This document shows positions 56,324-56,529 of a stretch of DNA of 64,000 nt, one piece after another (the stretch's first letter is position 1; each line of letters opens with the position of its first letter). The stretch comes from Octopus sinensis (Eukaryota), in contig NW_021835967.1 in assembly GCF_006345805.1 (NCBI RefSeq), positions 22,178-86,177 of the forward strand, read 5' to 3'. A program made the position numbers and the translations under genes. A model generated the notes under the pieces. That model was not told the DNA's origin, did not search any database, and saw nothing but the letters and a program-made list of their open reading frames with translations.

Positions 56324-56529
56324 TCAGTCGTGGTAATGTCGGATATATTTTTCGTTGGACTGGCCCAGGCAACCGTGGCAGAAACAGAGGTTGTAATCCC
56401 CGTTGTTGTTCTCGTCGTAATCATCGTGGTTGTGGTGGATGTGGCACTCCCCTCCGTCACAGGAATCCGCAATGCATCGCTGATGACAGCCGTTGTCGGA
56501 ATCTATACATCCGAGTAGGAGCTGACAAG
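56324..56529 (-). CDS. Exon 2 of a secreted CS-alpha/beta (defensin-like) peptide gene
   Basis: Polypyrimidine tract plus CAG acceptor (minus strand ctttttctcttttttttcctccccAG, AG at 56531-56530). Phase-1 frame gives (S)CQLLLGCIDSDNGCHQRCIADSCDGGECHIHHNHDDYDENNNGDYNLCFCHGCLGQSNEKYIRHYHD then TGA at 56326-56324. Cys spacing C-x6-C-x3-C-x4-C-x4-C-x19-C-x-C-x2-C. Confidence 0.85.

Follow-up and report, generated by a model that had tools for sequence, protein, structure and literature searches.

The 64,000-nucleotide stretch of Octopus DNA analysed here (the window) carries on its minus strand a predicted two-exon gene for a small secreted Cys-rich peptide, common to three Octopus species. The precursor is predicted to be 90 amino acids long, with an acidic, Cys-rich mature peptide of 66-67 residues behind a signal peptide. 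Judged by its Cys framework and a fold model, this peptide appears to be a new, octopus-restricted variant on the CS-αβ defensin scaffold. The gene is known here from genomic sequence and annotated proteins, and its parts are as follows:

63928 to 63994, minus strand: coding part of exon 1, with the ATG at 63994; encodes MDIMGRLVFMLMFLALIAPSGV and the first base of codon 23; predicted signal peptide.

56530 to 63927, minus strand: phase-1 intron of about 7.4 kb, with a GT donor, a polypyrimidine tract and an AG acceptor at 56531-56530.

56324 to 56529, minus strand: coding part of exon 2, residues 23-90; contains Cys24 and an eight-Cys framework, and ends in a TGA stop at 56324-56326.

The original prediction captured the gene in part. 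Its interval, 56324-56470, begins mid-exon at Ala43; the coding exon reaches 56529, and a further exon lies at 63928-63994. The exon holds nine cysteines rather than the eight first counted, Cys24 lying upstream of the eight-Cys framework. Translation of 56324-56527 on the minus strand gives CQLLLGCIDSDNGCHQRCIADSCDGGECHIHHNHDDYDENNNGDYNLCFCHGCLGQSNEKYIRHYHD followed by the stop, and the exon 2 product, which reads CQLLLGC...HYHD, aligns without gaps to the annotated O. vulgaris and O. bimaculoides proteins. Exon 1 has a counterpart in the O. vulgaris locus (L001, 10001-10067) with one difference in 67 nt. The splice sites of the intron are the same in O. vulgaris (OX597841.1), where the exons join between L001 positions 10067 and 16665, and 69 of its last 70 nt are identical. 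An alternative splice, from a donor after Gly21 to an acceptor AG at 56523-56522, would lose VSCQ and leave eight Cys; it was judged unlikely because the GTAAGT donor of exon 1, which begins at 63927, fits the donor consensus perfectly and is used in both annotations. In O. vulgaris a TATAAA sequence precedes the ATG by 66 nt, and the 5′ UTR and promoter of the gene fall outside the 64-kb window. On the other side, the 200 nt that follow the stop match O. vulgaris at 98% identity, and neither AATAAA nor ATTAAA occurs within 1 kb downstream. Second copies were sought in the 64-kb window by a scan for the Cys pattern and in the 27-kb O. vulgaris locus by tblastn, and none was found.

The precursor is laid out as MDIMGR, LVFMLMFLALIA and PSGVS ahead of the Cys-rich region, and the (-3,-1) rule permits cleavage after S23, C24 or G29. 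The predicted signal peptide directly precedes the Cys-rich peptide, and aligns with oyster signal peptides. With nine Cys, one would be left unpaired unless signal peptidase cuts after Cys24.

Annotated orthologues of 90 amino acids are present in O. vulgaris (88% identity) and O. bimaculoides (71%). In all three species the nine Cys, the start, the stop and the 90-codon frame are intact, without any indel. Conservation is assessed across three species, the window and these two, whose gene models are not independent because the O. vulgaris annotation took the O. bimaculoides proteome as input. The occurrence of nine Cys and a 19-residue loop between Cys5 and Cys6, without an indel, in both annotated Octopus proteins found is a feature beyond chance. 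The exact precursor sequence had no entry in the protein collection searched, and a profile search run exhaustively over 1.84 billion representatives brought up the octopus family only, with no squid, cuttlefish, nautilus or bivalve relative.

The eight-Cys framework is spaced C-x6-C-x3-C-x4-C-x4-C-x19-C-x1-C-x2-C. All intervals but the fifth, six of the seven, equal those of the oyster defensin Cg-Def (PDB 2B68). The fifth has 19 residues, where the reference spacing used for 8-Cys mollusc defensins, C-x5-6-C-x3-C-x4-6-C-x3-4-C-x7-8-C-x1-C-x2-C, has 7-8. The signature C30...C37-HQR-C41...G49-E-C51...C71-F-C73, which satisfies C...CxxxC...GxC...CxC, is invariant in the three Octopus proteins. 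Cg-Def and MGD-1 (1FJN) share with the octopus peptide the CxxxC, GxC and CxC elements, a Gly two residues past the last Cys, and a signal peptide directly before the Cys-rich peptide. They differ from it in lacking its 14-residue C-terminal tail and extra upstream Cys, and the resemblance shows no significant similarity beyond Cys. The only departure from mollusc Cys spacing is 11 extra residues, which the model places in the c-loop hairpin between two β-strands; this long fifth interval and a negative charge set the peptide apart from the Cg-Def/MGD type. The CS-αβ fold joins an α-helix, through two disulfides, to the final strand of an antiparallel β-sheet; its cysteines pair C2-C6 and C3-C7, with C1-C5 and C4-C8 added in 8-Cys mollusc defensins such as MGD-1. 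Big defensins have a hydrophobic N-terminal domain and a β-defensin-like six-Cys C-terminal domain ending in a CC doublet; assignment to that family was rejected, as the octopus peptide has no CC doublet and has eight or nine Cys with CxxxC/CxC spacing.

Alignment places the extra residues consistently. In a MAFFT alignment the oyster defensins show one 11-residue gap at the loop, and hhalign, run against a comparison profile limited to six near-identical oyster defensins (all that a word-index search with Cg-Def brought up), aligned all eight Cys by opening one 12-residue gap (P = 9e-4). Shuffling whole columns reproduced this match in 1 of 300 trials. When the Cys were fixed and the other columns shuffled, 20% of shuffles scored as high, indicating that the similarity to defensins is carried by the Cys framework alone. 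The native precursor matched no Pfam family even at E ≤ 10, and the native mature peptide had no match in the PDB by phmmer. Test sequences with the loop trimmed gave Toxin_3 scores of 16.6 and 19.4 bits (cutoff 21.5) and also matched Gamma-thionin, and their best PDB matches were the defensin-like CAL1 (E = 0.19) and DEFL32. After trimming, CS-αβ families take the first two places in both Pfam and the PDB, with a compositional match to ZnuA and one unrelated protein ranking below them; Cg-Def itself scores 19.1 bits against Pfam, under its cutoff of 20.4. The scorpion toxin-like PF00537 and the plant defensins and defensin-like proteins of PF00304 (CAL1, 6LCQ; PDFL2.1, 2MZ0) are the best scaffold matches, although they score below the Pfam cutoffs and match the loop-trimmed sequences alone. 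Their members have a similar length (about 65 residues) and four disulfides, but their Cys spacing is unlike that of the octopus peptide outside the CxxxC/CxC core.

AF2 gave an unusable model from the three Octopus sequences only (pLDDT 41). With six oyster defensins in the alignment the pLDDT was 62, and the model, guided by the supplied alignment, had a helix at 34-43 and strands at 48-55 and 67-74. The top nine Foldseek matches of this guided model were all CS-αβ, but with E > 1 and TM of about 0.46. The earlier description of the peptide as defensin-like can be kept for the Cys framework and for a moderately confident, alignment-guided fold model, but does not extend to significant sequence similarity.

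The mature peptide evolves rapidly. Exon 2 coding sequence differs from O. vulgaris at 14 of 203 sites (6.9%), against 127 of 7427 sites (about 1-2%) in noncoding DNA, which is about four times faster (Fisher P = 2e-5). Noncoding divergence was taken from chained alignments; aligning across the microsatellites and a SINE duplication gives an artefactual 84-86% identity. Twelve of the 14 exon 2 changes alter the protein, and the nonsynonymous rate (12/165) exceeds the neutral rate of 1.7% (P = 3e-5). By the classical N-versus-S contrast, the dN/dS comparison suggested with the original prediction, no significant difference emerges (omega 1.6, P = 0.74). Codons were compared between the window and O. 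vulgaris only, the O. bimaculoides protein having no gene on record. Almost no change is seen in exon 1 or beside the splice sites, and it is the exposed loop residues and the C-terminal tail that change quickly. Amino-acid change is fast while the Cys, the loop length and the net negative charge are kept.

A recount of the mature peptide gave the same composition as first reported, with nine Asp, three Glu, three basic residues (one Lys and two Arg) and eight His. Its calculated pI is 5.0, and its net charge at pH 7.4 is -8.3, compared with -8.4 in O. vulgaris and -3.9 in O. bimaculoides. The peptide is anionic in all three species, whereas Cg-Def and MGD-1 carry +3.9 and +6.1 at the same pH. 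His-richness is lineage-specific: the peptide has eight His in the window, seven in O. vulgaris and three in O. bimaculoides, and the loop has four, four and two respectively, the O. bimaculoides loop being net neutral. The regions concerned are:

56387 to 56443, minus strand: the 19-residue Cys5-Cys6 stretch HIHHNHDDYDENNNGDYNL, residues 52-70, by codon translation.

56426 to 56443, minus strand: the His cluster HIHHNH, residues 52-57, encoded by CACATCCAC CACAACCAC; the only tandem signal in the loop.

56327 to 56368, minus strand: the C-terminal tail LGQSNEKYIRHYHD, residues 77-90; the least conserved part.

The loop length proposed originally, 19 residues against about eight in bivalve defensins, agrees with the PDB sequences, which give eight for Cg-Def and seven for MGD-1, and it is exactly 19 in both O. 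vulgaris and O. bimaculoides. The refuting condition first set for the loop, its loss in orthologues, is thereby contradicted. The guided AF2 model draws the loop as an elongated β-hairpin with its tip at residues 56-66. Eleven of its 19 positions are invariant (I53, H54, N56, H57, D58, D61, N64, N65, Y68, N69 and L70). The His cluster is the same in the window and O. vulgaris, and reads QIHRNH in O. bimaculoides. The RHYHD ending of the tail, also singled out earlier, is present in the window peptide, but is replaced by ERFLR in O. bimaculoides and so is not kept; nine of the 14 tail positions vary across the three species.

The reading we favour, to which we give somewhat less than even weight, is that diversifying selection acts on a secreted effector with a metal-binding hairpin, most likely one of host defence. 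The lengthened His/Asp/Asn hairpin would be the working surface, where H54, H57, D58 and D61, joined by further His in the O. vulgaris lineage, would bind a divalent cation (Zn2+ or Cu2+). Once bound, the cation might link the negatively charged peptide to microbial surfaces that are anionic too, or the metal might be withheld from microbes. Protonation of His would make the charge strongly pH-dependent, from about -8 at pH 7.4 to about 0 at pH 5. A role for metals is plausible, and conserved metal binding, if any, could draw only on the candidates H54, H57, D58 and D61 together with N56, N64 and N65. A stronger version seems doubtful to us, namely that a defensin hairpin has been turned into a dedicated 2-His/2-Asp metal module with accessory His, yielding an anionic metal-dependent or metal-withholding immune effector in an arms race, at about four times the neutral rate or with strongly divergent alleles. 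If it were true, no CS-αβ defensin would have been described from a cephalopod before this peptide, and the fold would be put to a new use.

O. bimaculoides keeps just two of the four loop His and three of the eight overall, an observation that goes against the metal mechanism. A DxDxDG or EF-hand calcium site was also considered, by way of PROSITE PS00018 or a conserved Dx[DN]x[DN]G; PS00018 is absent from all three proteins, and DENNNG is found in the window peptide only (DESNNK in O. vulgaris, DLNNNK in O. bimaculoides). The calcium site was rejected because the motif is not conserved.

Precedents exist for parts of the favoured metal-binding mechanism. CAL1 chelates Cd through thiols, not through a His/Asp loop. 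Being a defensin-like protein that binds metal, it shows that such a scaffold is able to act on metals (PMC5811569). Microplusin, hebraein and the clavanins, antimicrobial peptides that are anionic or rich in His, depend on metal or pH through their His, tick microplusin needing Cu2+ chelation and hebraein acid pH via a His cluster (PMC5198042). Microplusin and hebraein are secreted, disulfide-stabilised and His-rich, and their mode of activity is the mechanism proposed for the octopus peptide; they differ in having an all-α-helical fold with His at the termini instead of in a hairpin, and have no sequence relationship to it, as the exhaustive search finds nothing outside Octopus. The His/Asp-rich flexible loop of ZnuA (PDB 2XQV) has a composition like HIHH...DY, but this bacterial periplasmic zinc-binding protein has another fold, and the match (phmmer E about 1, non-significant) is compositional and not homologous. 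Myticin C, an 8-Cys CS-αβ peptide, has a mature peptide that is exceptionally variable behind a conserved signal peptide. That pattern, set beside the octopus one by description and not by sequence, is similar; by description, myticin C differs in its positive charge and short c-loop, and in that its anionic part is a C-terminal propeptide and not the mature peptide. This mussel peptide is among the pH-dependent antimicrobial peptides (PMC5198042). Oyster defensins act by lipid II binding, according to the passage of PMC12773714 that cites Schmitt 2010, and nothing suggests the same for the octopus peptide.

The same scaffold could have another job. Unlikely, though deserving serious attention, is a secreted ligand of a salivary, reproductive or neuroendocrine kind, serving as a toxin or a signal, whose acidic hairpin would bind a receptor, channel or enzyme exosite without metals. 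The best scaffold profile and fold matches are scorpion toxin-like domains, not antimicrobial defensins, and an invariant signal peptide with conserved Cys and hypervariable exposed residues is equally typical of toxins, reproductive ligands and immune effectors. Net negative charge is unusual for defensins directed at membranes or lipid II, and Tyr residues stand in acidic surroundings (DDYDE, GDYN). Outside the loop, however, the Cys spacing is that of 8-Cys mollusc defensins and not of long-chain scorpion toxins, and the literature searched contained no octopus venom peptide of such a type.

The 11-residue extension might alternatively be a tolerated low-complexity insertion, a slippage-born passive spacer without function, with activity residing in the core scaffold. 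The loop is indeed of low complexity, 15 of its 19 residues being H, N, D or Y, with CAC as the sole codon for His and AAC as the sole one for Asn, a run of three AAC, a 9-nt near-duplicate and a GC3 of 0.84; within the tip, five of 11 positions are variable. The loop is nevertheless free of indels in three species, unlike the flanking noncoding DNA, and its invariant positions include the polar residues H54, N56, H57, D58, D61, N64 and N65, which a spacer would not need. The trinucleotide-slippage origin put forward originally is not supported: TRF reports only 56426-56444 (period 9, 2.1 copies) with a score of 31, under the default threshold of 50, adjacent identical codons are not above codon shuffles (P = 0.14; repeat statistics P = 0.14 and 0.77), and loop length is constant. 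A passive spacer is quite improbable.

About as improbable is an octopus-specific Cys-rich fold that is not CS-αβ and has defensin-like spacing by convergence or chance. Such a fold would fit a profile search returning only the octopus family, the lack of signal from non-Cys residues, the unconfident AF2 model of the octopus family alone, and nine Cys instead of eight. Against it, the six shared spacings, the GxC Gly and the Gly two residues past the last Cys all coincide with Cg-Def, the best matches of the loop-trimmed sequence are to CS-αβ families, and the guided model shows the helix and hairpin that the CS-αβ fold would call for. An unexpressed or decaying ORF passed between genome annotations is very improbable: interdependent gene models, no canonical poly(A) signal within 1 kb and a non-significant N-versus-S contrast could be cited for it, but the 90-codon frame, start, stop, both splice sites and nine Cys persist without indel to O. 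bimaculoides at 71% identity, exon 1 and the splice flanks are nearly invariant, TATAAA precedes the O. vulgaris ATG, and decay alone cannot explain a nonsynonymous rate above the neutral rate.

A gene-encoded CS-αβ-type peptide in Octopus would fill a gap among cephalopod antimicrobial peptides. A 2020 paper states that none had yet come from homology search or immune challenge (PMC7551771), and a 2025 review lists linear or derived peptides only (PMC11767717). Big defensins, reported as unannotated in Octopus genomes (PMC7203481), are the only ones noticed there before, and literature on octopus defensins, cysteine-stabilised peptides and the posterior salivary gland, or found by accession, held no description of the present peptide. 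It is invisible to Pfam and to a 1.8-billion-protein search because of the 11-residue insertion and reversed charge, and so illustrates why homology searches miss such genes. Since Cys, loop length and negative charge are kept while the substitution rate exceeds the local neutral rate, it is a small and clean system in which to examine diversifying selection acting on secreted effectors. It also serves to ask if metals or pH can be the means by which an anionic defensin scaffold works, and is easily testable, being obtainable by synthesis or recombinant expression.

Two repeats flank exon 2:

56568 to 59935, no strand: intronic tandem array of a 184-bp unit, about 18 copies (TRF), ending 39 nt upstream of the acceptor.

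55858 to 56176, no strand: two SINE-like repeat copies (TRF period 162, 1.9 copies), about 150 nt downstream of the stop, in probable 3′ UTR or flank.

The 184-bp array is also present in the O. vulgaris locus, at about 15157-16626, in roughly eight copies.

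The peptide is encoded by a predicted gene of two exons on the minus strand, organised as follows.

63994 to 63928, minus strand: exon 1, running from the ATG at 63994 through MDIMGRLVFMLMFLALIAPSGV and one further base, with the donor GTAAGT at 63927
56529 to 56324, minus strand: exon 2, starting at 56529 with phase 1 entry, preceded by a polypyrimidine tract and AG at 56531-56530

Translation of 56324-56527(-) gives CQLLLGCIDSDNGCHQRCIADSCDGGECHIHHNHDDYDENNNGDYNLCFCHGCLGQSNEKYIRHYHD, then TGA, and codons 56387-56443(-) specify HIHHNHDDYDENNNGDYNL, the stretch between Cys5 and Cys6 of an eight-cysteine framework (residues 52-70), referred to here as the loop. 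The original prediction placed the peptide at 56324-56470, an interval that begins inside the exon, at Ala43. For exon 1, the upstream minus strand was scanned for ATG-initiated hydrophobic ORFs ending at GT in a compatible phase, and one clean candidate was obtained (ATG 63994). The spliced product is a 90-aa precursor, with an intron of about 7.4 kb. It matches over their full length O. vulgaris CAI9742497.1 (90 aa, 88% identity) and O. bimaculoides A0A0L8H0Z6 (90 aa, 71-73% identity). The gene model was built without tuning to any database, and the agreement with both annotated proteins came afterwards. These two annotations are not independent of each other, because the O. bimaculoides proteome was one input to the O. 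vulgaris annotation pipeline (PMC10700109). At the O. vulgaris chromosome locus (L001, OX597841.1) the donor and acceptor are those of the window gene, and a TATAAA precedes the ATG by 66 nt. In neither genome did the 1 kb downstream contain AATAAA or ATTAAA. The exact window product was absent from a collection of 15 billion proteins, so the gene is apparently unannotated in its source genome. Because the (-3,-1) rule allows signal peptide cleavage after S23, C24 or G29, the secreted peptide would carry nine or eight cysteines; cleavage after the extra upstream Cys24 is predicted to leave an N-terminal Gln and eight.

The three Octopus proteins (window, O. vulgaris and O. bimaculoides, in that order below) align without gaps. 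All nine cysteines are invariant, and the loop is 19 residues long in each (HIHHNHDDYDENNNGDYNL, HIHHNHDEDDESNNKDYNL and QIHRNHDEFDLNNNKKYNL), with I53, H54, N56, H57, D58, D61, N64, N65, Y68, N69 and L70 invariant. The loop is thus retained in orthologues. The residue counts originally given for the mature peptide (9 Asp, 3 Glu, 1 Lys plus 2 Arg, 8 His) were exact, and its anionic character extends to all three species: net charges at pH 7.4 are -8.3, -8.4 and -3.9 (pI 4.8-5.0), compared with +3.9 for the oyster defensin Cg-Def and +6.1 for the mussel defensin MGD-1. The loop is conserved in length but not in histidine, which numbers 8, 7 and 3 per peptide and 4, 4 and 2 per loop. The RHYHD tail is replaced by ERFLR in O. 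bimaculoides; no segment varies more than the tail, 9 of whose 14 positions differ among the three. Because neither the His-richness nor the RHYHD tail is conserved, the specifically His-based part of the metal idea is weakened.

Window 44000-64000 and O. vulgaris L001 are collinear, and noncoding divergence was taken from chained alignments. Substitutions were found at 127 of 7427 positions (1.7%) across 9 kb downstream, 6 of 552 (1.1%) in unique intron, 4 of 200 in the first 200 nt past the stop (98% identical), 1 of 70 ahead of the acceptor and 1 of 67 in exon 1; unique noncoding DNA overall differs by about 1-2%. A divergence this low places the window in the O. vulgaris species complex, as a very close relative or another haplotype (possibly O. 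sinensis), and not in a distant octopus. Within the exon 2 coding sequence, 14 of 203 positions differ (6.9%), an excess over both downstream DNA (Fisher P = 2e-5) and the immediate flanks (P = 0.005). Twelve of the 14 changes alter the protein. This nonsynonymous rate (12/165) exceeds the neutral 1.7% (P = 3e-5), as it does the rate of the most diverged local block (P = 0.027). Conventional dN/dS was 1.3-1.6, which is not significant alone (P = 0.74) because there are just two synonymous changes. Four substitutions change charge (A43E, E50Q, Y60D and G66K) and cancel, leaving net charge the same. Such localised fast change is what one would expect if diversifying selection acts on a secreted effector; it would look no different with balanced divergent alleles, or if an unseen paralogue had donated sequence by gene conversion.

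The proposal that the loop arose by trinucleotide slippage was not supported. TRF detected in it a single 9-nt x 2.1 near-repeat, CACATCCAC / CACAACCAC, whose score of 31 falls short of the default cutoff, 50. Against codon shuffles there was no excess of adjacent identical codons (4; P = 0.14) or of repeated hexamers (P = 0.77), and loop length is invariant among the three species. GC3 is 0.84 in the loop and 0.59 in the rest of the CDS, in a window of GC 0.38, and all four loop His are CAC and all five Asn AAC; this codon use and GC3 are weak evidence for slippage. Loops are short, too, in the CS-alpha-beta peptides of arthropods and fungi in the PDB output, so that the extension would most simply have been inserted long ago on the line leading to octopuses.

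The Octopus cysteine spacing is 6, 3, 4, 4, 19, 1, 2, preceded by the extra Cys. That of Cg-Def (sequence checked against PDB 2B68) is 6, 3, 4, 4, 8, 1, 2, differing in the fifth interval, and that of MGD-1 (1FJN) is 5, 3, 6, 3, 7, 1, 2. When the three proteins were aligned with six oyster defensins using MAFFT, the eight cysteines, the GxC glycine and the Gly two residues past the last Cys fell in register with one 11-residue gap. In hhalign the Octopus proteins aligned with four CS-alpha-beta defensins through all eight cysteines (P = 9e-4). In a permutation control, the observed score of 18.3 was reached by 1 of 300 shuffles when every column was free to move (mean 11.1, sd 2.4), and by 20% of shuffles with cysteines fixed (mean 15.0, sd 4.3). 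The similarity to defensins is the cysteine framework, nothing more. The native sequence had no match in Pfam or the PDB, and a profile search over all 1.84 billion representatives returned the Octopus family only. With the loop trimmed in silico to a normal length, CS-alpha-beta families came out on top: in Pfam, Toxin_3 at 16.6 and 19.4 bits (cutoff 21.5), with Gamma-thionin also among them, and in the PDB, defensin-like CAL1 (E = 0.19) and DEFL32. Weaker PDB matches were a compositional one to ZnuA and one to an unrelated protein. For comparison, Cg-Def itself, a genuine defensin, scores just 19.1 bits against Defensin_2 (cutoff 20.4). AF2 with the three Octopus sequences alone gave a useless model (pLDDT 41). 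Adding oyster sequences raised pLDDT to 62 in a model guided by the supplied alignment, with a helix at 34-43 spanning CxxxC and eight-residue strands at 48-55 and 67-74; the extra residues lengthen the hairpin, its tip at 56-66. The top nine Foldseek matches of this guided model in the PDB were all CS-alpha-beta proteins, with E > 1. The term defensin-like is borne out by the cysteine signature but not by a significant profile match in Pfam or the PDB. We would file the peptide as a divergent CS-alpha-beta-type variant rather than as an established member of the mollusc defensins. A big defensin was rejected because there is no CC doublet.

Going beyond a secreted peptide of CS-alpha-beta type that has a conserved, extended hairpin and evolves under diversifying selection, we tentatively favour a role in host defence: the secreted effector would bind Zn2+ or Cu2+ through its elongated acidic hairpin. 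The bound metal might link the peptide to microbial surfaces, both of them anionic, or be withheld, and His might tune the effector by pH. Candidate ligands are the invariant H54-x-x-H57-D58-x-x-D61 with N56, N64 and N65. Also in favour are the extra His of the O. vulgaris lineage and the calculated charge, which is about -8 at pH 7.4 and close to 0 at pH 5; against it, half of the loop His is gone in O. bimaculoides. Precedents are microplusin, which chelates Cu2+, hebraein and clavanins, with a His-dependent acid optimum (PMC5198042), and the defensin-like metal carrier CAL1 (PMC5811569). The His/Asp loop of ZnuA, a non-significant match, illustrates a resemblance, no more. A calcium-type site was rejected: PS00018 is absent, and DxNxNG occurs in the window sequence alone. 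Rather less likely is that the peptide serves as a signalling or toxin-like ligand, with the acidic hairpin as its contact to a protein target. Tyrosines in acidic context (DDYDE, GDYN) look like tyrosine-sulfation sites. It is improbable that the loop extension is a functionally passive insertion, and quite improbable that the fold is a convergent, non-defensin one. An unexpressed ORF is very improbable.

According to a 2020 paper, neither homology nor challenge had until then identified any cephalopod antimicrobial peptide (PMC7551771). A 2025 review of cephalopod peptides lists octopartenopin, octominins, octopromycin, octoprohibitin and cuttlefish peptides only (PMC11767717), and big defensins alone have been noted in Octopus genomes (PMC7203481). 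Literature searches with accession numbers and related terms turned up no account of the protein. It is of moderate interest, and a demonstration of expression and metal dependence would raise that considerably.

The gene lies among the following features.

56568-59935: 184-bp satellite array in the intron (TRF), about 18 copies, ending 39 nt from the acceptor
L001, about 15157-16626: the same 184-bp array in O. vulgaris, about 8 copies
55858-56176: SINE-like repeats, about 150 nt past the stop
27554-27625, plus strand: mir-137 precursor (Rfam RF00694 over its full length, 78.3 bits; gathering score 56.7)
48868-49545, plus strand: decayed mobile-element ORF, below Pfam cutoff
52239-52805, minus strand: decayed mobile-element ORF, below Pfam cutoff
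240-1421, and numerous further sites (among them 12757-13265, 14678-15539, 20180-21084 and 47026-48861): mechanical ORFs, very long and made of repeats

The copy number of the intron satellite shifts fast beside exon 2, itself fast-evolving. Beyond the first 200 nt past the stop (window 56124-56323), O. vulgaris has about 1.3 kb of additional repeats (L001 16871-18242). RF00694 was the sole Rfam match within the window. One of the decayed ORFs has a weak match to zf-RVT, the reverse-transcriptase zinc-binding region (E = 0.0025), and the other to the DDE_3 transposase (E = 9e-5). The mechanical ORFs are micro- or minisatellite throughout, encoding Val/Ala/Gly, Tyr/Ile/Cys, Leu/Ser and Tyr/His runs, and are not genes; they show the region to be repeat-dense and gene-poor.
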